Source: Macrostomum lignano
Taxonomy: Eukaryota
Direction of reading: 5' to 3'
Length of the DNA stretch: 62,104 nucleotides
Assembly: GCA_002269645.1 (NCBI GenBank)
Contig: NIVC01003198.1
Coordinates: 1 to 62,104, forward strand
Of the stretch, positions 5,399 through 52,378 are shown piece by piece. Position 1 is the first letter of the stretch. The number at the start of each line of letters is the position of its first letter. Position numbers and translations under genes: made by a program. Under the pieces are notes generated by a model that worked only from the letters and a program-made list of their open reading frames with translations, was not told the origin of the DNA and ran no database searches.

Positions 5399-5765
5399 GA
5401 TTTATAACAAATAATACCGTATAAAACAAAGGATTTCTGATTGCTTGCTAAATTAGATTCGAATGTAGCTACTTATAGTAATACAATGGGGATTGGCCAG
5501 ACCTTACATCAATAGCAAAAGCAGACGTGTGAAATATTTTGCTAAGCTTTGACGTTAGCATAAACTTAAATTCACTTAGAAGCTCGGCTGAAAATAGAAA
5601 ATACGGACTCTATTCCACTTTTTCTATTTTAAAATTTTAAAGAACCGAAAGTAGTGATGTAAAAAAATTGCTGACATTTGCAAACATTTAATTTTCCGAC
5701 AGATCTATAAAACTCGGTTTACAACAAATATACGCTTGTATCATAAAACTAAATTCGATTTGCAG

Positions 5766-6401
5766 TACCCAGAGGTAATCATTCCAACGAAGCCAGACGC
5801 CATCGGCGAAAACTTCGAGTGGAGCCTGGTCTGCTACTCGTGTGCTCAGCCGAACGACGTATTGCGCAGCAGATGGCACCGCTTGCAGAATGAATGTGCC
5901 AACTGTGACAAGTGCATTCTGCTGGTCAGAGAGAAGGCCAGTGTGGCACCAAGTGACGTTTGGCAGCGTGTCCGACCCAGACCAAGGAAACTCGTCAAGC
6001 TGGACATGTGCAGGAGATACAGCGATATAGAATCCTGCAACGGTTGCAATCGTTCTGAATGCGACTTTGCCCATGGAGACGCGGAGCTGCGGCAGTGGGA
6101 GCTGGAGAGAATCGGCAAATTCTCCTTCAACAAGCTGCTGGAGTCCAATCGATCAGCTGGGTCAGAACTGCCGCTGATTCTCTGCGAGCGACCTGCGGTC
6201 GAAGGAGGCTCGGAGACCCGAATTTTCTACACGGGTCCGGAGTCGCTTCCGCCAGACTCCCTGCTGGGAAAGCACAAAATTCCTGCTATTCGCTCTGCAA
6301 CTCTCTACTTGAAGGAACTGAGTGCCAGCATCAAGGCATATGCTTCAGTGCTCACTGTGCTGAGGAGGAGCAGCTGTGGAACATCATGCAACAGAAAAGA
6401 G
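5766..6401 (+). CDS. Gene A (upstream copy) exon 2: CxxC module plus two ZC3H7-like CCCH fingers
   Basis: ttgcag acceptor, gt donor at 6402. Motifs WQRVRPRP...C..C..CDFAHGDAELRQW and CFSAHCAEEEQLW. One 1-bp deletion near 6249 relative to 51418, probably a sequencing error. Confidence 0.85.
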
Positions 6402-6492
6402 GTTAAATCGAGATGCTTACAGAATTCTAATCTTTACGTTATAGCTCGTAATATTGAATAACGCTCGTGTTACAATTCATTAACTGTTTTAG

Positions 6493-7128
6493 ATAATTGG
6501 CCCGAACATCTGGTTTTAAGAATCGACAAAATCGAGCCCGAACTCATTGGCTGGAGCCTCGAATCGAGCTGCGACTACATGTACAAGCTGACCTGCTACA
6601 GGTGCTCCGAATCACTGGATCCTCTGAGAAGCAGATTCAAGCTGAAGGAAACACAGAACTGTGAGCGGTGCGACCAGAGCATCCTGCTGGTCAGATCGAA
6701 GAACAATCAAATCAACAAGTGGCAACGCATCCGAGACAGACAAGGACATCTGGTCATATGTGATCTCTACCAATCAAACAAATGCAGGCGCTCCGAATGT
6801 GACTTCGCTCATGGCGATGTGGAACTGAAGCTGTGGAAGCTGGAGAGAATCGGCAAGCTCTCCTTCGACAAACTACTGAAGTCCAAACTGCCGCCGATTC
6901 TCTGCGAGCGGCCTGCGGTCAAAGGAGGCTCGGAGCCCCAGATTGTCTACACGGGTCCGGAGCCGCTTCGCGCCAGACTCCCTGTGAAACGTAAAGATTT
7001 CCACACTCTCTGCAACTCGCTGTTTCAAAGAAAAGAGTGCCTACATTACAAGTATAATCGCGGCAACTGCTTCTATGCTCACTGTGCTGAGGAAGAGCAG
7101 CTGTGGAACATATTGCGAAAGAAAAAAG
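6493..7128 (+). CDS. Gene A (upstream copy) exon 3: second CxxC plus two CCCH fingers
   Basis: ttttag acceptor, gtaag donor, phase 1-1, open throughout. WQRIRDR...CDFAHGDVELKLW and CFYAHCAEEEQLW. Confidence 0.88.
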
Positions 7129-23793: not shown

Positions 23794-25665
23794 ATGGCCT
23801 CACGAAATTTCAACAGGGAAATTCGGAAGAAACTGCTGGACTTTATTCATGTAGAAGGGGATTCTGAGGCTCATGAATTTAATAGTAGGCCTATGGATGC
23901 TGAAAGACAATTTGGCTCAATCTTGGATGAAGATGAAGGTGTTGAACCAACTGTATATATATCAGAGCTGGAGGATGATGCAGGCTCAGTGGACGAGTTT
24001 ATGGACGACAACATCATTGATGATGAGCCAGAGCCTGATTTCGCGCATCAGCTGCTGCTTTTTTATCTACTGTTTAACATCCCTGTGAGAGCAATGAATT
24101 ACTTGCTGCGACTGTTGGTTTCTAACGGTTGCCAGGTGCCAGCTACTTTGCATCTTTTGAAAAAGCCACTTTCTAAATTTAAAACACAAGTGGAAACCAT
24201 GGGAACAGGTCAATTTGCTTACGTTGGGATATTCGAAAACATTAAATACTGCGTGGATAGGATGATGTTGCCATCAAGTCTTTTCGACTCGACTGAGATA
24301 AAACTTAATCTCAAGTTGAATTGTGATGGTCTGCCACTCTTCAAGAGCAGCAAAATAACTCTGTGGCCAATACTAGTGCAGTTTGAGCATATTCGACAGC
24401 CATTTCCTGTTGCCTCATTTTGTGGACTAGGTCTGCCCCCTCTGCTTGATTACCTCGAACAACTGACTAATGAGCTCTCAATCCTGCAGACTACAGGAAT
24501 TCAGTATAAGGATCATAAATTCAAGGTTGAAAAGATCAGCTTCATTTGTGACACGCCTGCCCGTTCCTTTATTCAGGGAACGAAAGGACATGCTGGCTAC
24601 AGTAGTTGTTGTTGGTGCAGAACAACTGGGGAATACATTCATGGGCGTGTTGTGTTTCCATCATTCTGCGAATTGCGAACAAATGAGGACTACGCCACCA
24701 TGAATGAAAATAACCAAACAATACGGTCTCCATTGCTGTCAGTTGTTCCTTTTACCACTGCCTTTCCACCTGATTTTATGCACATGGTTTGTCTAGGTAT
24801 TATGAAAAAGCTAATGAAACTCTACACATCGGGAGTCAAAGGTCTTCGTGCAGCATGTAGACTTTCATTAGAACAAGTTAAGCGGATCAACAGTGAAATT
24901 TCCTACTTGCGTTGCTATGTTCCAAGAGAATTCAGCCGCAAGCCAAGACTTCTACATGATCTTAAGCATTACAAAGCGTCCGAGTTTCGCAACTATCTGC
25001 TCTATTGGGGCCCAGTACTTCTCCAGAAAGAACTACAGGCCCCGTACTATGAGCACTTCCTCCTACTTCATTTCGCAACGTACGTCTATTCGTCACCTAA
25101 ACTTCGGCACCTGTTCCCGGCTGCTAGAGCGTGCATTCAGCGGTTTCTTTTTGACATTCGCCGTCTCTTTCACGAGAGCCTTTACACAGTAAATTTTCAT
25201 GGCCTATTTCATCTACCAGACTTTGTAGAAATGCACGGGTCACTGTTGGAGATGTCAGCATTCCCATTTGAAAACTTTTTGGGACTACTCAAACGCCGGA
25301 TTAGAGCTTCAAGGCATATATTTTCGCAGTCAGTAAACCAACTAAGGAATGTCCGTGCTATATATGCTGACGCAGAATTAAACAACATCTATTTCTCACC
25401 AGAGTCACCTAACAACTGTGCTATTCTGCCAGATGGAAGAATTGTTGTAGTTTCAAATGTCACAGCATCTGGCCATGTGGATGGGACTGTACTGGAATTA
25501 ACTAGACACTTGTACCAGTTTGACAATAGTCGTTTTTCATCTAGTTTGTTGGGCATTGGATACTATCGACGGACAAGAGTACGTGTTTATGAATCGATTC
25601 CTGCAAACAAGGCAATCTGCATTCCTCGACAACAAGAGTTTCTAGTTTTGCCCTTCGTTCCGTGA
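23794..25665 (+). CDS. CMC/EnSpm-type transposase, 623 aa, intact ORF
   Basis: Motifs LNCDGLPLFKSS..LWPIL, FICDTPARSFI.GTKGH.GY..C..C, PDFMHMVCLG, PREFSRKPR....YKASEFR, NFHGLFHL, SAFPFEN. Confidence 0.9.
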   Translation: MASRNFNREIRKKLLDFIHVEGDSEAHEFNSRPMDAERQFGSILDEDEGVEPTVYISELEDDAGSVDEFMDDNIIDDEPEPDFAHQLLLFYLLFNIPVRAMNYLLRLLVSNGCQVPATLHLLKKPLSKFKTQVETMGTGQFAYVGIFENIKYCVDRMMLPSSLFDSTEIKLNLKLNCDGLPLFKSSKITLWPILVQFEHIRQPFPVASFCGLGLPPLLDYLEQLTNELSILQTTGIQYKDHKFKVEKISFICDTPARSFIQGTKGHAGYSSCCWCRTTGEYIHGRVVFPSFCELRTNEDYATMNENNQTIRSPLLSVVPFTTAFPPDFMHMVCLGIMKKLMKLYTSGVKGLRAACRLSLEQVKRINSEISYLRCYVPREFSRKPRLLHDLKHYKASEFRNYLLYWGPVLLQKELQAPYYEHFLLLHFATYVYSSPKLRHLFPAARACIQRFLFDIRRLFHESLYTVNFHGLFHLPDFVEMHGSLLEMSAFPFENFLGLLKRRIRASRHIFSQSVNQLRNVRAIYADAELNNIYFSPESPNNCAILPDGRIVVVSNVTASGHVDGTVLELTRHLYQFDNSRFSSSLLGIGYYRRTRVRVYESIPANKAICIPRQQEFLVLPFVP

Positions 25666-29052: not shown

Positions 29053-31937
29053 ATGAGCCTGCCCTACTTATACCTCGTTGAATTTGAATGCGACAGACGA
29101 CTGAGCATACTCACGGAAGACAACGTACTAACAAATGCTCGAGATGTACTTGTTTCGCCAGGTATGTTATAGTTCCCTTGATATCGACATGACCATTCTA
29201 ACATTTACCAGTGTCTAAATGTACAGTAATCTGCTATTTCAGCATCTGATGAGCATCCCATTGACGTCTTTTACCAAGATACAACATATCGCGCTTTCTG
29301 TCGCGGCATCTGTGAGTGCTTCTAGAATTCATTTATTTTAGTTTAGTTTAGATCGGAAGTCTTTATAAAAATTAAAACTATTTTTCCAGCCACAGAAAGA
29401 CCACAACTAGTGACCATAATGAAACGGTTGTGCATGGAAAAGGAAGCTAATCGAATTGCTCACAAGAACGGATCACAAGTGAATCGTTCGAGTTTCGGGC
29501 GGATATCTGTGCCGTCACATCGTTTTGGAACAACATCATCCGATGAGACAGCAGATGAAACCGATGTGCATTCTGCTGGGAGCCCATTTGAAGCGCCGGT
29601 TTCTAGGAAGCCTGCACCTGAATCCAGACCTATGCTTCCAGATCCGTTGCTCCTGTTACGCAATCAACAGCACAGCGCGTGTTTGCCGCCACATGTTTCG
29701 TGCAGTTCTGGCCCATCTGATTTCCAAAATATCATGCACAACGGAGGAGTTGTCCCACAAACCTCCAACAGTGGTGATTCTCTCCTCCGAGAACTAACTG
29801 GAGACCTGCGGGTCACGCCACATTCGTCGGTTTCAAGCGGGAATCATCCGGTTCGGGATCATCAGGGCCGTTTCCATTTGGAGACACAAACAATAGTGAG
29901 CAAGTGGGAGAAAGACTTCCGTTCCGCTGGATTGGACCTTTACTCCAACAGAGGTAATGCAAATCGAAATCGTGCTGTAGAAACTTCATGATAAAGTACT
30001 CGTACATGCGTTGTTCTTGTTCGTGCAGGAATAGTGCATCTACTCGCCCACGTGGTGCGCGACATCAAGATGGTTTCAAAGAACCAGTCGACCACCTCAT
30101 CTGACGCCGCTGAGTCTCCGTCACTGGTACATATAGATGATTCACTTGGTGACCTTCCGATGAAAAATGTATCTGAATACCAGAGCTTCTGTCGGAAGCT
30201 ACAAGAATCTGGTTTCCGGAACGCTATAGTAAGTCAATTCATGTCTCAATACTTTTATCAAATGTTTATGGGCGCAAAATTGCTTCATATTTCATGAGTT
30301 TAACATCATTTTAAATAAATATCACGAAATATTATGCTGCATGCATGAAAAAGTTCTTTGGTACGGTAAATATAAAAATGACTGATGTTGCAGGTGACTC
30401 AAACGCGCGTCCTTTTACAGATTTCGAAGCTACGACGCCTTGGTGGCAACAATGCTGAAGCCCACACAGCAAGAATAATGGACTTTCTGCTGTCAAGAAA
30501 GTTTCAACAGGCTTTCAATCGGTCTGGTAGGGATTATTCGCAAGCACGAAAAACAAGTGGCAATAAGCTATCATTTGCCAAAACCTTGGAACCGATCGTC
30601 ATTTGTAAGTTAATGTTATGAACTAATGCTCCTGCCAAACCTTTGCTTAGGAATTTATACGTATCATTTCCAAATGTACTTCGTATATTTATATTTACCC
30701 TTTAATGTACCACTAATGTGCACTACTAATATATTTACAGGGGCGTCACCAACGGGGGGGACAGGGGGGACGTGTCCCCTCCAGTAAAATATCTGGGGGG
30801 GGGCATGCCAATGCTTTGTCCCCCACCCCCACCTTGTGGCCCGTTATTAATTTTTGCTGCATGGTGACAAAATAGCACCTGCGGAGCTAAAATGAGTGCC
30901 TGCAGTGCTAAAATGAGTGTCTGCAGTGCTAAAATGAGTGCCTGTGGCGCTAAAATAAGTGCCTAAGGCGCTAAAATGAGTGCCTAAGGCGCTAAAATGA
31001 GTACCTGCGGAGCTAAAATGAGTGCCTGCAGTGCTAAAATGAGTGTCTGCAGTGCTAAAATGAGTGCCTGTGGCGCTAAAATAAGTGCCTAAGGCGCTAA
31101 AATGAGTGCCTGCGGAGCTAAAATGAGTGCCTGCAGTGCTAAAATGAGTGCCTGCAGCGCTAAAATGAGTGCCTGTGGCGCTAAAATAAGTGCCTAAGGC
31201 GCTAAAATGAGTGCCTGCGGAGCTAAAATGAGTGCCTGCAGTGCTAAAATGAGTGCTTGCAGTGCTAAAATGAGTGCCTGTGGCGCTAAAATAAGTGCCT
31301 AAGGCGCTAAAATGAGTGCCTGTGGCGCTAAAATAAGTGCCTGCAGTGCTAAAATGAGTGTCTGCAGTGCTAAAATGAGTGCCTGTGGCGCTAAAATAAG
31401 TGCCTAAGGCGCTAAAATGAGTGCCTGCGGAGCTAAAATGAGTGCCTGCAGTGCTAAAATGAGTGTCTGCAGTGCTAAAATGAGTGCCTGTGGCGCTAAA
31501 ATAAGTGTCTGCGGCGCTAAAATGAGTGCCTGTGGCGCTAAAATAAGTGTCTGCGGCGCTAAAATGAGTGCCTGCGGAGCTAAAATGAGTGCCTGCAGTG
31601 CTAAAATTAGTGCTGACAACACCGATTCTGAAAATAATGTACATGTAGGCATTTCGTCGTGTACATGTGCATATAGAATTCTTGGCTTTGTCCCCCCCAC
31701 CATAAAATCCATGGCGACGCCTCTGTCTATTTACCTGTAATTGTATTTCCATGCAGTTAAAACGATGTCACAAAAAGTACTCGCGTGCCTACGTGTAAAA
31801 TGCAGTGAATTTATTTGCTTTCAGTGGCCGTAACCAAGGCGTTTCCGCAAGCTTCTGAGGAGCGAATCACTCAAAAGATTAAGCGAATGCTGAAAGATTC
31901 AAAAGTGAGGGCCACGTCAAAGCGACATGAGGAGTGA
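29053..31937 (+). CDS. Second gene of the CMC element (TnpA-like accessory protein, DUF4806/BEN-like C-terminus), 6 coding exons
   Basis: Exons 29053-29161, 29243-29311, 29390-29953, 30029-30228, 30421-30604 and 31825-31937 all have GT-AG sites and compatible phases. Starts MSLPYLYLVEFECDRRLSIL; C-terminal LRRLGG...ARIMDFLLS...AVTKAFPQASEERITQKIKRMLKDSK. Confidence 0.75.
30738..31725. mobile_element. hAT-like MITE in the last intron of the CMC second gene
   Basis: TIR caggggcgtcacca / tggcgacgcctctg. 8-bp TSD tatattta/tctattta (7 of 8 match). Confidence 0.8.
30878..31612. repeat. 21-bp minisatellite, ~35 copies, inside the MITE
   Basis: Unit (c/t)ctgcngngctaaaat(g/a)agtg with variants. Confidence 0.95.
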
Positions 31938-35750: not shown

Positions 35751-36616
35751 AGAAATTTTCTTCAGGAGGGATAGGCCGTCCCTACGTAGAACTTTTCTTC
35801 AGGAGGGATAGGCCGCCCCTACATAGAACTTTTCTTCAGGAGGGATAGGCCGCCCCTACATAGAAATTTTCTTCAGGAGGGATAGGCCGCCCCTACATAG
35901 AAATTTTCTTCAGGAGGGATAGGCCGCCCCTACATAGAAATTTTCTTCAGGAGGGATAGGCCGCCCCTACATAGAAATTTTCTTCAGGAGGAATAGGCCG
36001 CCCCTACATAGAAATTTTCTTCAGGAGGAATAGGCCGCCCCTACATAGAAATTTTCTTCAGGAGAGATAGGCCGCCCCTACATAGAAATTTTCTTCAGGA
36101 GGGATAGGCCGCCCCTACATAGAAATTTTCTTCAGGAGGGATAGGCCGCCCCTACGTAGAACTTTTCTTCAGGAGGGATAGGCCGCCCCTACATAGAAAT
36201 TTTCTTCAGGAGGGATAGGCCGTCCCTACGTAGAACTTTTCTTCAGGAAGGATAGGCCGCCCCTACATAGAAATTTTCTTCAGGAGGAATAGGCCGCCCC
36301 TACATAGAAATTTTCTTCAGGAGAGATAGGCCGCCCCTACATAGAAATTTTCTTCAGGAGGGATAGGCCGCCCCTACATAGAAATTTTCTTCAGGAGGGA
36401 TAGGCCGCCCCTACATAGAAATTTTCTTCAGGAGAGATAGGCCGCCCCTACATAGAAATTTTCTTCAGGAGGGATAGGCCGCCCCTACATAGAAATTTTC
36501 TTCAGGAGGGATAGGCCGCCCCTACGTAGAACTTTTCTTCAGGAGGGATAGGCCGCCCCTACATAGAAATTTTCTTCAGGAGGGATAGGCCGTCCCTACG
36601 TAGAAATTTTCTTCAG
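35751..36616. repeat. 37-bp minisatellite, ~23 copies
   Basis: Unit agaaattttcttcaggagggataggccgcccctacat, head to tail with no spacers. Confidence 0.97.
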
Positions 36617-38258: not shown

Positions 38259-41081
38259 ATGGCCGGTGTCGAGTGTCACTCAGGCTGGTTGCCTGAAGTC
38301 AATTGCGACTGTCGAGAGATCGAGAGAATTTTGCAAGAGCTACAAAATACAAACAATACATGGATGAAAGGTTTCTGCCAGCTTGCTATAGCCCACCTGT
38401 ACACTCTACCTGGCTTCTGCAATTTGACTGAAGCATGGAAGGCTCTGAATTCCGCCAGTCAGCCAGACGAAGAGGTAGAACATAACTTATTTAACCTACC
38501 GACCATTGACATTCGATTTCTTGCCACAGCAATGAAACTAAGGCTTGAGAAAATGCAGTTAGGACACCCATCTAAGCACGAAGATTTAAAGAATGAATTA
38601 ACGACTTTATGGGCAGCTCAGGACGAGTCGGTGAAGGCAACTTGCTTGGTTGCCAAAGGCTGGACGATGCACTGGTTTGCAGTCGGACCGCAGCGAGACG
38701 AAGTTTTGAAATTGTGCCACAAAGCATTAAAGGATGCTCAAGAAAAATTAGCCACTATACCTGATGATGCTGGTCAATTGAGGCATGTCAAATTTCTCTG
38801 TCTGTTTGAGCTGGCTTGTACTTACTTCCAACAGCGAGATGATCACCATAAAATTCTTCAGGAAGAGCTTGACCTGTGGACTACTACCAAAATGTTATAT
38901 GATGAAAACAAATGGAATCACCCGCTGTTTGAGCTTGACTTTTACAGGGCCGTCGCTTCCATTCCGAAACACTTTGATGACTGCAGAACTTTCGCCGATG
39001 AGAAGTATTGTGAAATCATGAATAAGTCTAGCTTGTTGAATCAACTCTTTGAAGCTTATTGCGCTCTTCCGGAAATCTACGACGTGCTGAAGAAACAAAA
39101 AAATGGCAAAGATCTGGCAGAGGATTTTAGAACTAAAATAGGTAAATTGCTGGAAGAGGGAACCAATTTCAACGAATGCGAGATGCATAAAAGATTTTTG
39201 CGTCGAAGAATCGAGTCAACTGAATCAAAGACTGCAATCGACTTGCTCAAAAGTGAAGAGAACAAATGGAAGAACGAGTACTGGTTTGCCAATAGACTCA
39301 TCGTGCTAGAATTATTGGTAGATGATTCACTGGTTGAAGATTTCATGCAACGGTTCGAGTCTCTCTGTACAAACTTTCCATTAATGGCACCGGAAATGCG
39401 CTTAGAAAAAGGCATATTTCTGTTAAAGTGCGGCAGCGTCGAAGAAGGAATGCACAGCCTCACCTGGGCAATGAATGACTATCTGCATCCTCCGCTAAAC
39501 TTTAAGCCTTACTACTCTAGCAAGCTAAAGGATGTAGAGTCGTTCTTGAAGGATTCTGAGCGTGATTTGTATCTGATTTGGATTGAAAGTCAGTTTAAAA
39601 CTGATTTTAAGACTTATCACTTCGATGACTCCATTCGAAGGTACCGGACTGAGCTCACAAGGAAAGATCTGACGAACAAACATCGCCATTTCATCAGTGA
39701 GCACATCGGAAGGCTGCTGATGAAGAAGTCGCAATTTGAAGAGGCGGAGCAAAAGTTCAAGTCTCTGCCTGACGCACTTGAGCACAAAAACGCAATGATT
39801 GCTGACTCCCTCTTGTGTCAGGCGGAGAGCTTGTCGAGCGGTGATGACGTCACAGAAGTTTGCAAGGCCAAGCTACAGGAGTATAAAGCACAGCCAGATA
39901 ATGCAGTTCACACAACCAGCATCGGGATGCGGCTGTACCTGCTGAACGAGTGTGCAAAGCTAGGCTGCAGAGACGCCATTCATGAGGCTCTGCTTCTGCT
40001 GGAGGACATCCGGAAGCAGAGTGGCGGAGGTCACTTGTTGCAGCCAGCTCCAAACCATTTGTTCCTGCACAGCAGTCGCGTCTACGTGTTCTGCTCCCGG
40101 CTGCTTCAGCTGAGAGAGCAGGGATTCCATATCGAGCGAAGAAAAAGCTTTTTGGACTCTGGCGGTGACCAGATGGGTGACATGCTGGACAAAGTAGAGC
40201 AAATCTTGGCCACTGAGTTGTATCCAAGAAGAATTCGACTGAAAATGACACAGCTGGGCTTGAAGTATGAATCAGTAGAGGAAATGCTTCAGAGTCCCGA
40301 GGCTGAGCGCAGCATTTGGCACACGCTGGAGGAGTCCCGAAAAGCACTCGATAGCTTCTGGACTCAATTCGTCTCTAAAGTAGAGAAGCAGGAAGCTGTC
40401 TCTGAGTCGAAGAATGTTCCCAGATATTACCCATTTGCCCGCCGTGATTCGAAAAGCAGCACTGAAAGCTTTTCAAACCTTTTCAAAAACAATTGGAGCG
40501 ATCAAGCAAAACTGTTTACTTCACTACTTCAAAGCATGAAAAGCACTGTTGATTGCCTCACCCAGGCTGAAGAGAATGGAGTTGAACTTGATGCATGCGT
40601 GAGTTCTCTGGAAAATATTAAAAAAGCGAGGTTAAAAGATGAAGTATCAGATGATCAGCTAAACGATTTCAAACAGCAGCTGGAGAAGCTCAAGAAATTT
40701 CGCAACACTGCAAAAAGTTCCGCAAGTAGTAGTCAGTCAAAGCAAGCAGTCTCAATCGACAAGCTTAGAAAGTCAAGTGAGAAATTTATCGAAATGCTAC
40801 AGAAACCATTCCCACTCGCATTTCGAGGGAATGACGAAGTCTGTAAATGGATGATCCGGAAAGAAAAAGCCATTGATTCCAACCACGGTTGTTGGCACGT
40901 ACACTGGTGCAACGTAGCAAACTCAGATAAGCACGATGAGCAGGTTAATCTTGCCAGATTCAACCAAGAAATCAAAGAAAGATTTGATCAGAAGAAGAGT
41001 GGGCCAATTGATGTTCTGGCTTTGGCTCATTGCGCTGCGGAATTCGCTGAAGAGGCCAGGCTCGTTCTAGAAGAGTACACG
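38259..41081 (+). CDS. Gene A exon 1 (941 codons): IFIT-like TPR N-terminus plus HEPN-like region
   Basis: Uninterrupted ORF. The gtaag donor at 41082 sits at the same position (KYT/EYT) as in gene B. Domain calls rest on motif recall. Confidence 0.9.
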
Positions 41082-42142
41082 GTAAGTTTTTCTTAATTCC
41101 TTTTTTAAGAATCAAGAGAAACTATTTTTAATTGGACATTTTAAAATGGAGATCATCGAACAAAGATTATTCAAATGCTGTTTTCAAGCTCTTTTCGATA
41201 GTGTAGCAGGTGTAATTTTACTTATTTGTTCGATCTCGCAATTTCCACTAAATACCACCAAGTTGTAGCAGATTTATTTGTTCTGCCTAATTGAATCCCT
41301 CCGTTTGTCACTAAGTTATAACTCTTTCCTAGGAAATTTCCTGGTTCACTAGATTTCTTTGAAATCTCGTGGTAGCGATGAGTGCCCGAGCGGTAAGACA
41401 CTGTTCTAAATTGCTAAATTAAATCCAAAATTACAGCGTTCCCGGGGATCAAGGGTGTCCAGCGGCAAGCCTTAATACCTAATATTTGTCTGTCTTCTAA
41501 TGCCTAATAATTTAATGAATCTTATGACCTTCTTAATACCCCTTGAACCTGTACGGCTTTATCTCTACTTCTGGGTCTGTACGACCTTTATTGCCTGTAC
41601 GGCCTTTTCCCTACTTCTGGTATAAGAAATGAATAAGCAAAGATCATCTCTCAGCAAAAATTTCCTTTATCAAAAGAGGTAAGCTAGGAAGGAACAAACT
41701 AGAGCTTGTTATGTTATGTTATAAGAAACGAGACCAAATGGCTTGCTAAGTTGTGTCGACAGCTCTTGACTCAATCGATAAGTAAGCGAGGTCTTTTATT
41801 AGTTAATTTGCAAGTACGTACATTTAGAAAGTACAGTGCATCGCGTAGATGTACATAGAGCGCTCAATGCTAACACAACACCTCCCTACCATAGAATGGG
41901 AAATATAAAAATATTCGAAAGAAAAAAACCTTATTCGATCACGACATCTAACAAAAACGATTAAAACTAACGAAGCAATCGATAATAATCGTCGAACTTG
42001 AAAAACAAGATTAGGGGAATAAAAAAACAAAAATCTAAATTCTTAAATCAAAATACTTCATCTTAAGCTTTACGAGTTATTAAGCAAAAATCAATTAAAC
42101 CTCTTAGTTAAATCAAAGACTGGCATTTACATTTATACTTAT

Positions 42143-45100
42143 TTAAAAACTGTCCTGATACCTCATCGGCTTCTTGATGAGTCGCCACTTGGCTGTGCGA
42201 TATTCGATCTGATCAGATGCAGAGGCCGGCTGCGCTGAGGCCGGCTGCGCTGAGGCCGGCTGCGCTGAGGCCGGCTGCGCTGAGGCCGGCTGCGCTGAGG
42301 CCGGCTCCGCTGAGGCCGGCTGCGCTGAGGCCGGCTGCGCTGAGGCCGGCTGCGCTGAGGCCGGCTGCGCTGAGGCCGGCTGCGCTGAGGCCGGCTGCGC
42401 TGAGGCCGGCTGCGCTGAGGCCGGCTGCGCTGAGGCCGGCTGCGCTGAGGCCGGCTGCGCTGAGGCCGGCTGCGCTGAGGCCGGCTGCGCTGAGGCCGGC
42501 TGCGCTGAGGCCGGCTGCGCTGAGGCCGGCTGCGCTGAGGCCGGCTGCGCTGAGGCCGGCTGCGCTGAGGCCGGCTGCGCTGAGGCCGGCTGCGCTGAGG
42601 CCGGCTGCGCTGAGGCCGGCTGCGCTGAGGCCGGCTGCGCTGAGGCCGGCTGCGCTGAGGCCGGCTGCGCTGAGGCCGGCTGCGCTGAGGCCGGCTGCGC
42701 TGAGGCCGGCTGCGCTGATTCGTCGAGATTTTGATGTACATCTAGTTCTTGGTGATATTCGTCAAAAGGAACTCCAATTTTCCGTAGTCTGAGAAATCGT
42801 GTGTTCCGTCTGAGAAGCTGACCTGTCTCCGTGCGGACGAAAAAAGATCTTCTGGAGTCGCCCACCTCACTGTCGACCTCAGCCGCCATCCAGTCTCGGC
42901 GACCACGCTGAAGCCACACAGGGTCGCCAACGTTCAGTTGATGAAGCGGGCGAGCACCGCGATTGTAGAGTTGTGCCGCTCGGTTGCGCTGACTCTCGAA
43001 AGCCTCAATACTAGCTTGAATGTGGGTCTCTTTAGGACGAAGATCTTGGAAAGTCGCTGGCAGATCACACCGCAGTTTTCTTCCGAATGCCATCTCAGCA
43101 GGACTCGGAAAGCCGCTTCCAATCGGTGTGTTTCGATAGTGCAACATGGCCATTTCAAAGCTTTGCCCAGTCTCGTGGCACTTCTTGATCATGTTCTTGG
43201 CTGTCTGCACGTACCGCTCGGCTTTCCCATTAGACTGCGGGTAGGTCGAACTGGAGGTCCTGTGCTTTACTTTAAAGATCGATAGCATTAGCTGGAACTC
43301 GCGAGACGTGAATTGTGGACCACCATCACTGATGAATTTCTCCGGGACTCCCAAGTTGTGAAAGTGCTCGCGGAGAATTTGCACGACAGCTGATGTCGTG
43401 GTTGACCGCAGTCGGTTAATGCTCATCCAGTGACTGTAGAAGTCTACGTAGAGCAAATAGGTTGCACCAGAGAACTAAAAAAGATCCGCTGAGCATACTT
43501 GAAACGGAAAATCCGGGAATATCCACCGACATTAGTGTCTCCTTTGACTGTGTCTTCATGTTTTTTTGACACGACTCACATTGGCCTACTGTGCGCTCGA
43601 TGCAGTTGCGCATGCCAGGCCAATAAAAATAATCTTTCGCCTTTAGGTCCATTTTGACTATGCCTGGATGGCCGGCGTGTAAAATGTTGAGAACGCTTTT
43701 TCTTGAGTTTCCTATAGGTACGTAGATTCGATATTTAAGACAGAGCAGGCCTGCTACCTCGGTCAGATCATGCCGAACGTCCCAGAAAACCTTTAAGTCT
43801 TCAGACAGGCTCGATCGACGCTCCGGCCACCCATCTCGGATCACATCCAGCAGCCGCATGCTTGTCGCATCCGATGATGTTTCAGTGCGTATCATGTCGA
43901 GAATTTCAGCGTCACCACTGAAGCAGCGCTCCACTGAAAGGACCTGCCATCTAGAGCTTCTTGAAGCTGCACTGCCAAGTAGTCCGTCGGCCCGTATGCT
44001 CGGCTCAGAGTGTCGGCCACGTACAACTCCTTTCCTGGTGTGTACTTGACCCGGATGTCATACGGTTGCAGCTGTAATAATAGGCGCTGAATTCTGGGAG
44101 TAGTGTCACAGAGCGCCTTTTTGAAGATTGCTTCCAGTGGCTTATGATCACTCTGTTCTTGAACTGTGCGGCCCCACAGGTATCGATGAAACTTTTTGCA
44201 GCCGTATAAAATAGCTAGCAGTTCTTTTTCGATTTGTGCGTATGCTTTTTGAGCGTCTGTCATGGCTGACGAGGCAAAATCTACCGGTCGGTCGTCTTGA
44301 AGTAGAACAGCTCCGATGCCACTCTTGCTTGCATCCACTGAGACAACCACCGGCTTGCTGACATCAAATGTTGCTAGAACGCGCTCAGAGCAGAGTTCAG
44401 TGATGATGGAGTCGTACGCCTTGTCATGCTGGTTCAGCCAGCTCCACATAACGTCCTTTTTTAGTAGATGTCGCAGTGGCTCTGCAGTCGAAGAAAGGTG
44501 TGGGCAGAACTTAGCAAGATACGTTACACAACCCAAAAATCGTCTCAGCTGTTCTCGCTTAGCTGTTATGCTCTCAAAATCATTCGGCCGAGTCATTTCT
44601 TTGATTGCCTTAACTTTTCCTGGGTCTGCTCTTAAACCCATTCGATCCAAGGATATCGCCTAAGTAGTTCAGCTCTGTTAAGCCAACTCTCATCTTCAGT
44701 GGGTTCAATGTGACATTTGCACGGCTGCACTGCTCAAGAAGGTCACGGACGGCTTGATCATGCTCTTCGACAGTTTGACCCCACACGATAATATCGTCGA
44801 AAAAATTCTTAGCATTTTTAAGTGATTTGTGACATTTTCCTCCATACGCTTCTGGAACACCTCGAGAATTGAGCTGAGTCCATACGGAACACGTTTCCAG
44901 CGGTAACGGCCACACGGTGTGTGAAAAGTGGTCAGAAACGAGCTTTATTTGTCCAGCTTGAGTTGATGAAAACTCTCATTTGCGTCAAATGAGCTGTACA
45001 TTACAGCTCCAGCTGTTGCTATTCGAACCTCCGCTGTCGGTATCGGGTGGTATTCTCTAATTATGAATAGGTTCAGATAGGTCGGGTCGAGACACAGTCT

Positions 45101-46580
45101 CATTGATATATGGCGACATACTATGGCGACATTCGAGACCCATTGTGTTGGCTCATCAACCCGAACGATGGTGCCATCTTTCTCTAGTCGTTCAAGCTCG
45201 CACTTTAGAGGCTGGTATGCTGCAAATGGAACCTTTCGAGGTGGCTGAACCTTTGGAACAGCGCTATCGCTTAGCCGAATCGTATAAGGTTGACTCATAC
45301 AGCCTACACCGTTAAAAACTTTGGCGTAACTAGTTTTCAGTTGGCCTGGAGTGAGCTGTGATGGCTTTGTGACCTTAGCGAAAGTCTTTGGACTTTGTTG
45401 GATACTAAATAACTTTTTGATTAATTCTAGGTCTTTCAGTGCAGACTTGTAGCCAATTATTGGCGTCGAGTTCTCGCCTACTACCACTAGCTGAATTCGG
45501 AGATTCTTTTTGCAGGGTGATGACACAGTCAAGTGTGTGACACCTACATCATCCAGCTGCTGCTTATTGTACGTCATCAGTGTCCATGAGGTTGGCTCGA
45601 TCTGAGCCTTTGGAGCCAGCTGAGTTAGGTGCCTCAATGGTATGACGTTGACGTCTGCCCCTGTGTCGACCTTGAACAGCAGCTTTCTGCCAGTCTCTTT
45701 AACAGTCAAACTCACCATCATTGGGGAATTGCTAGTTGGTGGATTATCCTGGCCGCAGTTTGGCTTCTCCAGCGTCATGCTCGATGCCGACATAGGAACT
45801 AGAGACTCGTCTTCTTCAACCAGCTCATTAATCTTCTTGGACGAGCGGCACATTCATTCTTTCGACCACAGGTGCTGCATTGCTTTCCATAGGCCGGACA
45901 CTTGCGTCGTTCGTGTTGGTAACCACAGTAACCGCAGCTGCGTCCCGGTGGCTTGAATTGGCTGGCTGACCTTGAACCGCGTCCACTGATGAAGATGTCG
46001 CACTGAGTGGAATTCGACTTGGCTGTGCGGCTGTGCTAAGGCTCGAGCTTGTCGCTTTGATGTCTCAGAAGCTCGTCCGATTTGAATCGCACGGTCCAGT
46101 GTGAGCTTTTCCTCCCTCAACAGTCTTTTTCGAAATGCTGGGTCGTTGCTCCCGATGACAATTTAGTCTCTAATGACGCTGTTGACGATATTCTCCCGAT
46201 TTGCTGGCTTTTCGTAGTTGCATCGTTTTATTAACTGACGCAGAGAGCTAACAAACTGATGGAATTCCTCTGCATCACCTTGGACTCTAGTCCTGAAATG
46301 ATAGCGCTCAAATGTCTCCTTAGAGTTTGGCTCACAATATTCTTGAAATTTTGCGACTACCTGCTCGTATGTCTTTACTTCCTCTGCTGCAAATGTTGAA
46401 TAGATGTCTTGCCCTTCGGCTCCTAATGCAGTAAGAAGTGTTGCAATTTTCACTTCGTCGTCCTCGCTCGTCTTCTTGGTAGCCTTCATTTAGAGATCAA
46501 ACGCCATTTTCCATCTTGGCCAATTCTCCGCACGGTTTGTATCAAAGGCGATTCGGTTCTGGAGGCCTCAGACCATCCAT
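42143..46580 (-). pseudogene. gag-pol: Gypsy gag-pol, frameshifted
   Basis: VDTGADVNVIP (protease), FFDDIIVWG (RT), VDASKSGIGAVLLQ and YAQIEKELLA (RNase H), HAGHPG...CESC (integrase zinc finger), SDGGPQF and PQSNGKAER (integrase core). Split over several frames. Confidence 0.92.
42226..42718 (-). repeat. 15-bp tandem repeat, ~33 copies, encoding (PASAQ)n in the integrase tail
   Basis: Unit ccggctgcgctgagg on the + strand, in frame in ORF 42143-43456. Confidence 0.97.
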
Positions 46581-46589
46581 GCTTATTTT

Positions 46590-48038
46590 ACAAGTAGTAT
46601 GAAGACGCACACGTCTTTTTGCCACCAGTGAACGGGCTTCTTTTTAGACGTGGGTCTTCATACTACTTGATAAACCTAGTTTTGTACCGATAAAAAAGAA
46701 CTGAGAATCTCAAGAAAAATTTAAATCTCTACTTATCCCATTTTTCTCTTTGTCTGTTCTGTTTTTCTCCTCTCTAATCTCTCTCTAGTCTCCCCTCTCC
46801 TCTCGCTTTTCTCTCGCCTTGCCTTATCTTTATCTCCTCTTTTCTCTTCTCTATCTATTCTCTTTCATTTCCTCTCTTATCTGTCCCGCAACCATGAACT
46901 GGAATCTTCTACAATAGGCCCTCGATCTAAAAAAATTGTCTAAAGTCTCTAGAGCGTAGCAGGGTTATACAACTCCATTTAAGCTGGTTGTTTCGGCGCA
47001 AGATCCTCTAGCATCAGCTTAAGTGCTTGGAAAGCCAGGCCAGTTTTGTGGGACCTAATACTCATACTGACTGATACTATCAATCAGATAGTACACTAAA
47101 CTGACATAAGATACGGGGTTGCAAAAAAAGCTATAAATAAAGTTATTCCAAAACTGTACATACCTACTTAATAAGCCGCGTATCGCCTGACCTTTTAGCC
47201 TGGGGGGGGGATGTACACATAGTGACTTGGAGCAGCGAAATCAGACGGCGGCAATATAGACCAATATAGTACAGCAACTATGCTATAGAAATTCGAAATC
47301 GGCTTATTCGCACCATGTTCTCAAAATTATAATGAGCAATAATGCGAAAGTCATGTGATTTTTTGAAAAATCGATTTTTTCGGCACTGCAGAATCGTAGG
47401 GAAACAAAACTTTAGACACTTGTAGATTTTTGCATTGCGCATCCAACTGCACTGCTTTGAAGCCCAAACTCAAAAAGCTTCGTAGGAAAAATTGGCGAAA
47501 TAATAAAATGAAGGTCATTTTTTACCCAAAAAACCCACCAAAACTGCATAAAGACGCCGAAATAAATTAAAGTGCCATATACCATTTTGTAGGAAATTTA
47601 GTTTTACAACTTTGATCCTTAGATGTCGAAGCCGTATCTCGTAAGGTGTACCAGAATTTTGAGATCTCCCAGAAGCACTTTTGAAAAAATCGTCTTTCCA
47701 CTTAATTTACGGCTTAGTAATAAAATCTCTGCACTTAAAAGTATATTCATTCGATAGATTTAAAAGTTTTCTATCGATCAACACCTCACTCAACTCAATC
47801 GGTGCAGTGGTTGCAAAACAGGAGCATTTTTTGGCGAAAAAACGTGAAATTTAAAAATGCTATGTAAGAGTCTAACTTATTTACTCGTAAATACTTTCTA
47901 GCCCATGTCGGCCTTCGGCCGCCATGGGTAGAAATTATTCACTCGCCCTCGGCCCCTAACGGGGCCTCGGGTTCTTTCGCTCTCGCCCGACGCCGCCTTC
48001 GGCGGCGCCGGGCTCGGCTCGTTCACTGGTGGAACTAG
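46590..48038. mobile_element. Composite X-Y repeat inserted between the Gypsy PBS and gag ATG
   Basis: Same as 1455-2870 but retains the GC hairpin cgccgccttcggcggcg. Confidence 0.65.
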
Positions 48039-48355
48039 TTGCAACTTAAGCTTGCGACGCCATGCTATGTTATAAGAAACGAGACCAAATGGCTTGCTAA
48101 GTTGTGTCGACAGCTCTTGATTCAATGGATAAGTAAGCGAGGTCTTTTATTAGTTAATTTGCAAGTACCTACATTTAGAAAGTACAGTGCATCGCGCAGA
48201 TGTACATAGAGCGCTCAATGCTAACAAAACACCCAAGTTAGATGGTTTTATTTTCATGCCAGGCGAAGCTTTTATATAATAAACAAAGGGGGTGTGGGGT
48301 GCATCGTAATTGACGGGGACAACTCAAAACTAAATTAGATAAAAATTTTAACAAA

Positions 48356-50567
48356 ACAAGTAGTATGAAGACGCACACGTCTTTTTGCCACCAGTGAACG
48401 GGCTTCTTTTTAGACGTGGGTCTTCATACTACTTGATAAACCTAGTTTTGTACCGATGAAAAAGAACTTTGAGAAGCTCAATAAAAATGTAAATCTCTAC
48501 TTCTCCCATTTTCTCTCTTTGTCTGTTCTGTTTCTCTCCACTCTAATCTCTCTCTAGTCTCCCCTCTCCTCTCCTCGCTTCTAGCTCTCGTTTTATCTCT
48601 TATCTTCTCTTTAGTCTTATCTCTTCTCTATTCTCTTTCTCTCTCATCTGACCCGCAGCCATGAGCTGGAATCGAGTCTTCCATAATAGGCTTTAGAAGG
48701 CCTCGATATAAAAAAATTTCTAATGACTCCAGAGCGTAGCAGGGTTATATTTTGCAAAGAAAGCTATAAATAAAGTCTTTCCAAAACACTGTACATACCT
48801 ACTTCAGAAGCCGTATCGCCTGACTTTTTAGTCGGGGGGAGGATTGTACACGTAGTGACTTGGATCTTGCGCCCGACAAACTTTGTACTGGGCTTGCAAT
48901 TCAAATGTGCCTGTTAAAGAGCTAAATTTAATACGAAATTCTAATCACGTGACGCCCGTTTATCGATCTAATTTCCCTTGGTCTGTGTGCGAGTCAAATG
49001 AAGCTCTATTACACGCCCTCCAAACCAAGCCGCCAAGCCCTCTCGCGTTGCCACAACCCCACTTGGAAGGGACGGGTGTGTACATTGTATGTACGATTAT
49101 TCCTTCCTTTCCTTTCCTTTCTAACCAGCTTAACTCAGCCCAACGCCAAAGCCATGCAAGCAATCGCATGCAAATGCAAATTATGCAAAGCGGTATGCGG
49201 CTTAATCTGATGAATTTTGGTGCAAAAAATGCATTTTTACCTCAAAAGAACATCGAATGGTTATGAAACTCAAGAAATCTGTTAAATTAGCTGTATGGAA
49301 TACTGTGCATTGGTTTCAGTGCAAAATTCTTACCATTTCCAGTTTAAATAGCCCCGAAACTAACATAAAAGTAAAAAGTCAAGTTTTCAGTTTTTTATCG
49401 ATAATTTTTTACCCAATGAACCGAATCTCTAGAAATTGCACACAAATATGCCTCATTATGTGGGAAATCAGATTTCATAAAAATCTTGTCGTCCTATTGC
49501 GTTATTTTGCCTGATTTCAAGCAAAATATAAAAAAATCACTACTCTGATCGATTTCCAATCACTTTTGACACATGAGCACTTGTTGCAGACACTCAAAAA
49601 CTTGGTAAATTTTAGCCAGACATTAGTACAACTAATTGCAGTGTCCGCATTTGATTTACCATTCTTTTAAAAATTTAATCACCCTTTTTTCTGGCACCCA
49701 ATCAGCCAAAAATCACAAATTATCGATTTCTGATCGATTTTTCAACCCGAAAGCAGCGAAATCAGACGGCGGCAATTTAAACCAATATAGTACAGCAACT
49801 ATGCTATAGAAATTCGAAGTCGGATTATTCGCACCATGTTCTCAAAATTATAATGAGCAATAATGCGAAAGTCATGTAATTTTTTGAAAAATCGATTTTT
49901 GTCAATTTTCTCAGCACTGCAGAAGCGTAGGAAAACAAAGCTTTAGACACTTGTAGATATTTGCATTGCGCATCCAACTGCACTGCTTTGAAGCCGAAAC
50001 TCAAAAAGCTTCGTAGGAAAAAGTGGGGAAATAATAAAATGAGGGTCATTTTTTTACCCAAAAAACCCACCAAAACTACATAAAGATACCAAAATAAATC
50101 AAAGCGCCATATACCATTTTGTAGGAAATTTAGTTTTACAACTTTGATCCTCAGATGTCGAAGCTGTATCTCGTAAGGTGTACCAGAATTTTGAGATCTC
50201 CTAGAAGCACTTTTGAAAAAATCGTCTTTCCAGTTAATTTACGGCTCATTTAAAAAATCTCTGCATTTAAAAGTACATTCATTCGATAGATCTAAAAGTT
50301 TTCTATCGATCGACACCTCACTCAACTCAATCGGTGCAGTGGTTGCAAAACAGGAGCATTTTTTAGCAAAAAAACGTGAAACTTCAAAATGCATAAGAGT
50401 CTAACTTATTTACTCGTAAATACTTTCTAGCCCATGTCGGCCTTCGGCCGCCATGGGTAGAAATTATTCACTCGCCCTCGGCCCCTGGCGGGGCCTCGGG
50501 TTCTCTCGCTCTCGCCCGACGCCGCCTTCGGCGGCGCCGGGCTCGGCTCGTTCACTGGTGGAACTAG
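48356..50567. mobile_element. Composite X-Y repeat, copy b, in duplication copy 2
   Basis: Nearly identical to 3188-5398. Confidence 0.6.
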
Positions 50568-50934
50568 GATTTATAACAAATAATACCGTATAAAACAAAG
50601 GATTTCTGATTGCTTGCTAAATTAGATTCGAATGTAGCTACTTATAGTAATACAATGGGGATTGGCCAGACCTTACATCAATAGCAAAAGCAGACGTGTG
50701 AAATATTTTGCTAAGCTTTGACGTTAGCATAAACTTAAATTCACTTAGAAGCTCGGCTGAAAATAGAAAATACGGACTCTATTCCACTTTTTCTATTTTA
50801 AAATTTTAAAGAACCGAAAGTAGTGATGTAAAAAAATTGCTGACATTTGCAAACATTTAATTTTCCGACAGATCTATAAAACTCGGTTTACAACAAATAT
50901 ACGCTTGTATCATAAAACTAAATTCGATTTGCAG

Positions 50935-51571
50935 TACCCAGAGGTAATCATTCCAACGAAGCCAGACGCCATCGGCGAAAACTTCGAGTGGAGCCTGGTC
51001 TGCTACTCGTGTGCTCAGCCGAACGACGTATTGCGCAGCAGATGGCACCGCTTGCAGAATGAATGTGCCAACTGTGACAAGTGCATTCTGCTGGTCAGAG
51101 AGAAGGCCAGTGTGGCACCAAGTGACGTTTGGCAGCGTGTCCGACCCAGACCAAGGAAACTCGTCAAGCTGGACATGTGCAGGAGATACAGCGATATAGA
51201 ATCCTGCAACGGTTGCAATCGTTCTGAATGCGACTTTGCCCATGGAGACGCGGAGCTGCGGCAGTGGGAGCTGGAGAGAATCGGCAAATTCTCCTTCAAC
51301 AAGCTGCTGGAGTCCAATCGATCAGCTGGGTCAGAACTGCCGCTGATTCTCTGCGAGCGACCTGCGGTCGAAGGAGGCTCGGAGACCCGAATTTTCTACA
51401 CGGGTCCGGAGTCGCTTCCCGCCAGACTCCCTGCTGGGAAAGCACAAAATTCCTGCTATTCGCTCTGCAACTCTCTACTTGAAGGAACTGAGTGCCAGCA
51501 TCAAGGCATATGCTTCAGTGCTCACTGTGCTGAGGAGGAGCAGCTGTGGAACATCATGCAACAGAAAAGAG
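50935..51571 (+). CDS. Gene A exon 2 (CxxC plus 2 CCCH)
   Basis: Open frame YPEVIIPTKP...EQLWNIMQQKR. Phase 0 matches the exon 1 donor. Confidence 0.88.
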
Positions 51572-51662
51572 GTTAAATCGAGATGCTTACAGAATTCTAA
51601 TCTTTACGTTATAGCTCGTAATATTGAATAACGCTCGTGTTACAATTCATTAACTGTTTTAG

Positions 51663-52295
51663 ATAATTGGCCCGAACATCTGGTTTTAAGAATCGACAAA
51701 ATCGAGCCCGAACTCATTGGCTGGAGCCTCGAATCGAGCTGCGACTACATGTACAAGCTGACCTGCTACAGGTGCTCCGAATCACTGGATCCTCTGAGAA
51801 GCAGATTCAAGCTGAAGGAAACACAGAACTGTGAGCGGTGCGACCAGAGCATCCTGCTGGTCAGATCGAAGAACAATCAAATCAACAAGTGGCAACGCAT
51901 CCGAGACAGACAAGGACATCTGGTCATATGTGATCTCTACCAATCAAACAAATGCAGGCGCTCCGAATGTGACTTCGCTCATGGCGATGTGGAACTGAAG
52001 CTGTGGAAGCTGGAGAGAATCGGCAAGTTGTCCTTCGACAAACTACTGAAGTCCAAACTGCCGCCGATTCTCTGCGAGCGGCCTGCGGTCAAAGGAGGCT
52101 CGGAGCCCCAGATTGTCTACACGGGTCCGGAGCCGCTTCGCGCCAGACTCCCTGTGAAACGTAAAGATTTCCACACTCTCTGCAACTCGCTGTTTCAAAG
52201 AAAAGAGTGCCTACATTACAAGTATAATCGCGGCACTGCTTCTATGCTCACTGTGCTGAGGAAGAGCAGCTGTGGAACATATTGCGAAAGAAAAG
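51663..52295 (+). CDS. Gene A exon 3 (CxxC plus 2 CCCH)
   Basis: Same as 6493-7128 except a -1 and a -2 deletion near the 3' end, within a cluster of 1-bp losses that look like read errors. Confidence 0.8.
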
Positions 52296-52378
52296 GTAAA
52301 TAATCATATTATATGCTATTAGAGTACGTTTTTAACCTTCGCTATTCTCTCTTCGTAAATTAGAACCATGGTTTGGAC

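Follow-up and report, generated by a model that had tools for sequence, protein, structure and literature searches.

A 62,104-nucleotide stretch of the flatworm Macrostomum lignano (contig NIVC01003198.1, positions 1 to 62,104, assembly GCA_002269645.1), referred to here as the window, carries on its forward strand a gene whose 941-codon first exon ends in a previously undescribed conserved helical end-domain. This C-terminal module belongs to what appears to be a small, animal-endogenous family. With moderate confidence we propose that the invariant residues of the domain, which are mostly charged, come together in a single polar pocket at which RNA is bound or cleaved. A first-pass annotation of the window had described the same region as a HEPN-like motif set with an N-x-D-K-H candidate active site and a helical insertion of ~100 residues, and had raised the question of whether a bacterial defence domain had been transferred horizontally into an animal immune-like gene. 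The ordered motifs and the invariant histidine do mark a genuine domain that is conserved, all-helical and extended by a lineage-specific insertion of predicted helical structure; the nuclease assignment and the bacterial origin fared less well, as set out below.

A conserved C-terminal domain in a small family

All five motifs listed in the annotation were found where it had placed them in the translation of 38259-41081 (+). The annotation had, however, overlooked the two strongest elements of the module, the R/K868-E869 pair and AHxAAEFAE (amino acids, aa, 923-931). Position 41081 of the window is the end of exon 1 as well as of the annotated region. The exon and the elements of its C-terminal module are as follows.

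38259-41081, forward strand: exon 1 of copy 2, the intact copy, an open reading frame (ORF) of 941 codons with a GT donor at 41082-41083; it encodes an IFIT-like N-terminal tetratricopeptide repeat (TPR) region, more helical repeats and the C-terminal module
40300-41081, forward strand: C-terminal module with its insertion (aa 681-941), the final 261 codons of exon 1
40323-40352, forward strand: motif 1, TLEESRKALD (aa 689-698), which sits in the long predicted helix aa 680-712
40422-40436, forward strand: motif 2, RYYPF (aa 722-726), with the nearly invariant P725
40437-40784, forward strand: variable linker that holds the lineage-specific insertion (aa 727-842); the Ser-rich stretch TAKSSASSSQSKQ forms part of it
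40785-40811, forward strand: FIEMLQKPF (aa 843-851), an amphipathic helix
40857-40865, forward strand: R867-K868-E869, which reads 'RRE(H)' or 'RREH' in most relatives
40893-40934, forward strand: W879-x3-W883-x4-N888-S-D-K891-H892, a helix closing with the candidate active-site motif
41025-41051, forward strand: AHCAAEFAE (aa 923-931), the best-conserved element of the module

An exhaustive HMMER search with an exon-1 profile against 1.84 billion representative proteins, mostly prokaryotic or metagenomic, returned only 17 matches at E ≤ 1e-3. The named relatives are all from M. lignano, and the others come from two eukaryote-size ENA assemblies (ERZ25074608 and ERZ26859043), in which they are encoded by single-exon, partly tandem genes on contigs of 50-750 kb. 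A word-index protein search gave one match for the window protein and four when an alignment was used, missing members that the exhaustive search found. Relatives of 19-30% identity are retrieved by the C-terminal module alone at E-values of 1e-7 to 1e-19, and the motifs are therefore more than a chance arrangement. Those that match in this module only include P0007 (E = 1.4e-18), P0008 (E = 6.9e-12) and the 96-aa fragment P0012 (E = 2.4e-7). Judged from these sequence searches, the family would be small and endogenous to animals, being seen in M. lignano and the two ENA assemblies. Intronless tandem duplicates of the family were also observed in the ENA assemblies (locus L002, 13374-18569; locus L005, 3298-5720). 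Some copies there are called as two separate genes, as with P0017 and P0014, a sign that more pseudogenes or frameshifts may be present.

Conservation was read from an alignment of 13 sequences (A3); those that do not belong to the window protein's own clade are 19-30% identical to it. The columns E869, W879, W883, K891, H892, H924 and E931 are invariant, five of these seven being E, K or H, and P725, N888, A923, A926, A927, E928 and F929 are nearly so. Motif 1 follows the family pattern [ED]-[SA]-[KRH]-x-x-L-D-[RQSHA] in this alignment, and FIEMLQKPF is kept across the family as an amphipathic pattern only. A pattern that imposed nothing on the N-x-x-K-H positions was run over all proteins and loci and yielded a wider set of 19 distinct modules. 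Both K891-H892 and E869 are present in all 19, and N888 is found in 18, with D in the remaining one. The annotation had made its reading depend on conservation of the DKH histidine across homologues, and this residue, H892, is thus retained in every module.

P725 and E869 are 144 aa apart in the window protein; P0002 has a distance of 158 aa and P0015 one of 183 aa, and the shortest relatives (P0007, P0014, P0018 and P0008) have only 53-62 aa. An insertion is therefore present, as the annotation had claimed, although its helical character is predicted only at low confidence (see below). The insertion of P0015 is independent of that in the window clade.

Pfam-A (2025 copy), NCBIfam and PADLOC do not contain the domain, and no solved structure is similar to it in sequence; scans of the window protein and of its C-terminal 301 aa against Pfam, NCBIfam, PADLOC and PDB sequences returned nothing credible. 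Within the insertion, matches to the VPS28 N-terminal domain (PDB, E = 0.03-0.05), DUF7141 (E = 0.14) and AcrIIA4 (E = 0.065) were rejected as helical or low-complexity noise, each being confined to the window clade.

Predicted structure of the module

A single-sequence AlphaFold model of aa 623-941 was unusable, with a predicted local distance difference test (pLDDT) score of 42.8. An AlphaFold2 (AF2) model built with the 13-sequence alignment reached a mean pLDDT of 65.5 and a predicted template modelling (pTM) score of 0.56. In this model aa 657-712 and 859-937 are all helical, with pLDDT of 80-93. The values are 80-92 for the motif-1 helix, 85-93 for AHCAAEFAE and 35-60 for the insertion. 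The core of the module is predicted to comprise five helices, namely aa 680-712 (motif 1), 859-875 (containing E869), 879-892 (ending in NSDKH), 898-912 and 919-937 (containing H924, E928 and E931). H892 lies at the C-terminal end of helix 879-892 in the model and is followed by a loop and the last two helices. Helical periodicity would place E869 on the hydrophobic face of helix 859-875, and the i, i+4, i+7 spacing of H924, E928 and E931 suggests that these three residues share one helix face.

With a query that contained the low-confidence insertion, and a method that is weak on helical proteins, Foldseek searches of the family-alignment model returned only generic coiled coils and bundles from the PDB (E ≥ 0.3), and nothing below E 0.2 from the PDB and BFVD together.

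An IFIT-like N-terminus and putative RNA-binding tails

When the N-terminal family profile (A5, 270 residues) was compared with PDB sequences, a single match was obtained at E ≤ 1, to IFIT5 (3zgq, E = 0.0016). Positions 6-166 of the profile align co-linearly with IFIT5 residues 14-173, running from 'LELECHFTW' to 'EKGWALLKFG..Y..A...F..AL', and with the full-length profile IFIT1 (4hou) was matched at E = 0.0056 beside generic TPR matches. The module thus sits in an IFIT-like TPR protein, which bears out the description of the gene as immune-like. The N-terminal signature 'ECH[FS]xW...KGW..xxFG', encoded at 38259-38800, was also seen in P0004, P0005, P0007, P0009, P0010, P0017 and P0018.

IFIT1 and IFIT5, TPR proteins induced by interferon, act as clamps on 5'-ppp or cap0 RNA. 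The N-terminal ~160 residues of the flatworm proteins are co-linear with both, including the segments 'LECHFTW' and 'KGW.L..FG..Y..A', and helical repeats occur in an RNA-related context in both groups. However, the flatworm proteins have about double the length of the ~470-aa TPR clamp of the IFITs, with which only those ~160 residues align, and they add the C-terminal module and CCCH or RGG tails. The IFITs have no enzymatic domain, and interferon induction does not apply to the flatworm family. PMC3688568 reports IFIT genes from jawed vertebrates.

The only homologue returned for the window protein by the word-index search is UniRef A0A1I8J5T1 (P0001) of M. lignano, which carries the name 'C3H1-type domain-containing protein'. 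Its model splices ...LEEYT onto YPEV..., giving 50935 as the start of exon 2. The remainder of the gene is laid out as follows.

41082-50934, forward strand: intron 1, ~9.85 kb, with an AG acceptor at 50933-50934
50935-51571, forward strand: exon 2, first Cys-rich/CCCH-type zinc-finger module (YPEVIIPTKPDAI...); the junction agrees with P0001 and P0003
51663-52297, forward strand: exon 3, second zinc-finger module, with a possible frame change near 52210-52237

The tail of the window gene consists of two Cys-rich modules of putative CCCH type, and P0004 and P0008 end instead in long RGG-type repeats. CCCH and RGG tails are typical RNA-binding appendages. Together with the IFIT5-like N-terminus, they make an RNA-directed role of the family likely.

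UniRef labels the relatives 'C3H1-type domain-containing protein', and no Pfam zf-CCCH match was found in the exon-2 translations or in P0001. The downstream exons in the window (50935-52297, 18907-20277 and 5706-7109) encode a repeated module of ~120 aa with the pattern CxxC...CxxC...WQRxRxR...C-x8-C...C-x3-H followed by 'FAHGDxELxxWxLERIGKFSFNKLL'. Despite the UniRef label, this Cys-rich module is recognised by no Pfam model and may be an undescribed zinc-finger module. The third copy of the zinc-finger exons, at 5706-7109, is 69% identical to P0001 aa 990-1341; no matching exon 1 is present in the 5.7 kb upstream, and it has either been lost or lies beyond the start of the window.

Two gene copies and a conversion tract

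The window contains a second, paralogous first exon, which shares with copy 2 a region of high identity.

15787-18679, forward strand: exon 1 of the paralog, copy 1, with TAA at 16765-16767 and, near 17489 (about 17489-17492), a 4-bp insertion
39759-41100, forward strand: putative gene-conversion tract shared with copy 1 (17360-18700)

The TAA of copy 1 is in frame and stands where relatives have Ser, and the 4-bp insertion shifts the frame; copy 1 is either a young pseudogene or affected by assembly errors at these points. Its C-terminal module (17495-18679) includes an 83-aa stretch identical to UniRef A0A1I8G3V8 of M. lignano. The DNA of the two copies is ~60% identical up to ~39758 and 97-100% identical within the tract, and identity drops again ~20-70 bp into the intron. 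At the protein level the copies are 96% identical over the final 398 aa versus 45% upstream. Such a sharp switch in sequence identity indicates gene conversion or recombination between the paralogs. The tract was observed to cover the last ~440 codons and to end shortly after exon 1. The annotation had pointed to the presence of the motifs in both paralogs; this is correct, but it carries no evidential weight because the conversion tract appears to have homogenised the copies.

Synonymous and non-synonymous codon differences between the copies within the tract are equal in number, at 13 each. Eight of the amino-acid replacements map to aa 845-894 (40791-40940), and four require two nucleotide changes. 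The changes in this segment flank the invariant E869 and N888/K891/H892 and spare them. Clustering of substitutions around invariant residues would fit a functional surface, the numbers being small, and the cluster could stem from diversifying selection or from a mosaic of small conversions with other paralogs as donors.

Proposed function of the domain

The reading we favour, with confidence about evenly balanced, is that the conserved C-terminal all-alpha domain brings its invariant residues together in one polar pocket for binding or cleaving RNA. The proteins of the family are built from an IFIT-like N-terminus ('ECHFxW...KGW') followed by helical repeats, the C-terminal module and, usually, an RNA-binding tail. 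Within the module the invariant, mostly charged set comprises R/K868-E869, W879, W883, N888, K891-H892, H924, E928 and E931. Of these, E869, K891, H892, H924, E928 and E931 may line the pocket. RNA would be presented by the TPR part together with the tails and bound or cleaved there, either through His/Lys/Glu chemistry as in HEPN or other metal-independent RNases, or at a His2Glu2-3 metal site. In such an IFIT-type RNA sensor the domain would be the effector end or the ligand end.

A possible parallel to such chemistry is offered by RNase A and RNase T2, which use a set of His, Lys and Glu for metal-independent cleavage that forms 2',3'-cyclic phosphates. The flatworm domain has two invariant His, an invariant Lys adjoining one of them and invariant Glu. 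The likeness is one of chemistry only; RNase A and RNase T2 have alpha+beta folds with disulfides, not helical bundles, and neither Ribonuclease_T2 nor RNase A gave a Pfam match in the flatworm proteins.

Several points weigh against the RNA-pocket proposal. The AF2 model is mediocre overall, having been built from 13 sequences, and with its insertion included it has no Foldseek match at E < 0.2. The clustering of the invariant residues is deduced purely from helical periodicity, and the invariant Trp and Ala, together with a helix conserved on all sides, could result from packing rather than function. The link to the IFITs has an E-value of only ~1e-3 against the small set of PDB sequences, and no IFIT protein was returned at E ≤ 1e-3 in the search of 1.84 billion representatives.

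Comparison with HEPN domains

HEPN domains are four-helix bundles with an Rx4-6H motif that ends helix 3, in which the residue following the Arg is usually N, D or H; an acidic residue is often found in helix 2, as Ex3[KR], and inserts are frequent (PMC3710099, Anantharaman et al. 2013). Families that keep the His and lack the Arg are described in the same survey (Parep1/8 and c2405), as are animal families fused to TPR or CCCH (DZIP3/hRUL138, C6orf70/DUF4209 and RNase L/Ire1's KEN domain), which show lineage-specific expansions (PMC3710099).

The annotation's reading was that the module is a true, divergent HEPN domain predicted to act as an RNase. In this case N888-x3-H892 would be a remnant of RNxxxH, with K891 or R/K868 replacing the lost Arg. 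We consider this possible but unlikely. The predicted layout is compatible with HEPN, with the motif closing one helix and an invariant Glu in the helix before it. As for HEPN helix 3, a loop and then another helix come after the helix closed by the motif, E869 resembles the helix-2 acid, and N888 stands four residues ahead of the His, in the place that usually comes directly after the Arg in RNxxxH. The complete retention of H892 is likewise in keeping with HEPN, as are the known families without the Arg. The flatworm protein, with its variable insert of predicted helical character, its fusion to TPR and CCCH parts and its lineage-specific invertebrate expansion, also resembles the TPR- and CCCH-fused HEPN families of animals.

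The Arg itself, however, is missing. At positions -4, -5 and -6 from H892 it occurs in none of the 19 modules, and position -5, taken by V, I, A, H or D, is mostly hydrophobic and in register with both Trp, on whose face it would lie. An Ex3[KR] motif was not seen either, the residue at +4 from the invariant E869 being D, L, I, A or T in A3. An hmmscan of the 13 members of this alignment against Pfam-A at E ≤ 10 found no HEPN-clan family in any of them and no family common to more than one. PADLOC and NCBIfam models match at most one or two (≤1-2) of the 13, and none of these models represents a HEPN or nuclease family. Searches of PDB sequences with family profiles likewise gave no HEPN match. 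The Foldseek comparison that the annotation had proposed as a check, made with the low-confidence insertion in the query, yielded 80 PDB matches, and no HEPN chain is among the 50 listed. The flatworm insert lies upstream of the acid helix rather than separating this helix from the one that ends in the His, and the best-conserved helix of the module, AHxAAEFAE, which carries a second invariant His and Glu, has no counterpart among the hallmarks of HEPN.

What survives of the HEPN-like description is therefore an NxxKH motif at a predicted helix end in an all-helical domain with an invariant His; the Arg is absent, and no match was obtained to a HEPN family model or, among the listed Foldseek matches, to a HEPN structure. 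With one defining feature failing, HEPN membership is unproven, not refuted, and the module is most aptly seen as a domain of a new, unclassified kind, which may function in the manner of a HEPN without the Arg.

A structural alternative

A non-catalytic structural role appears rather improbable to us. The domain would in this case be a C-terminal cap or oligomerisation bundle of the TPR solenoid, or a structural metal site, and its invariant His, Glu and Lys would provide buried salt bridges, hydrogen-bond networks or metal ligands. Such a role would account for the invariant W879 and W883, which lie on one face, and for the Ala-rich AHxAAEFAE helix, whose conservation all round is typical of a tightly packed central helix. 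It would also suit the predicted position of E869 on the hydrophobic face of its helix and the lack of an enzyme-family match, and two His with two or three Glu could chelate a metal. On the other hand, a purely structural bundle would not usually have five of its seven invariant columns occupied by charged residues or His. The substitutions between the paralogs cluster around the invariant residues while sparing them, and the RNA-binding tails are attached directly downstream of the domain.

The RNA-pocket reading, which we prefer, can be taken further to a flatworm antiviral-type protein, in which an IFIT-like sensor of RNA 5' ends is joined to a new RNase domain and to CCCH or RGG tails. 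We regard this as speculative and distinctly improbable. The RNase domain would be either a derivative of HEPN that lacks the Arg and relies on K891/H892 together with E869, or a helical nuclease fold of a new His/Lys/His/Glu type, and recognition and cleavage of foreign RNA would be combined in one polypeptide outside the vertebrate interferon system.

Horizontal transfer

That a bacterial defence domain moved horizontally into an animal immune-like gene is exceedingly improbable. The suggestion goes back to a bacterial family with a similar motif order (hNLRSALD...FPI...LQPY...L.N.DKH) to which the annotation had pointed; no tool result stood behind it, and the family could not be identified. 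The AHxAAEF[AV]E pattern gave 422 matches in the 185,579 species genomes of GTDB, 99 in IMG/VR viral contigs and 561 in JGI metagenomes, none of which was confirmed by tblastn, and no consistent PADLOC model match was found. The HMMER search of the 1.84 billion representatives, mostly prokaryotic or metagenomic, gave only the 17 matches described above, of which the named ones are all from M. lignano and the rest are the single-exon tandem genes of the two ENA assemblies. Because no bacterial, archaeal, viral or metagenomic relative was found at the sensitivity used (HMMER, and pattern scans with tblastn), the question of horizontal transfer is without basis, and on these sequence comparisons such a transfer can be regarded as effectively refuted at that sensitivity.

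Other elements of the window

Intron 1 of copy 2 harbours a retroelement on the opposite strand.

ORFs within 42143-45853, reverse strand: gypsy-type long terminal repeat (LTR) retroelement in intron 1, with Pfam matches to rve (integrase) and RT_RNaseH and with protease-like ORFs

The integrase ORF of this element contains a 33-copy tandem repeat of 15 bp (42222-42718) that is 99% uniform and encodes (QPASA)n. An intact 623-aa ORF at 23794-25665 (+) has weak matches to DUF4218 and DUF1258 only, which we take to be transposase-associated, and is probably a DNA-transposon gene. Tandem-repeat arrays are located at 36000-36616, 30847-31752 and 20628-21278, and one array, with 16.7 copies of a 37-bp unit, lies just upstream of the gene. 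Two repeat-encoding ORFs with 'GTHFSTA' and 'IKEVGGQQWVSAGLHxLLLKV' units were also observed. A tRNA-like string near 41370 was not called as a tRNA by ARAGORN.

Implications

The significance of the domain is limited by its narrow taxonomic range and by the lack of a decisive fold assignment, and if it were merely structural it would be an ordinary lineage-restricted orphan domain. If the K-H/H/E site is catalytic on RNA, IFIT-type RNA recognition would extend to a protostome, and would there be coupled directly to an effector domain, which the vertebrate IFITs do not have. Either a novel variant of HEPN or a novel helical nuclease fold would be added to the known nucleases, and Macrostomum, a tractable flatworm model, would gain a candidate innate antiviral gene family.

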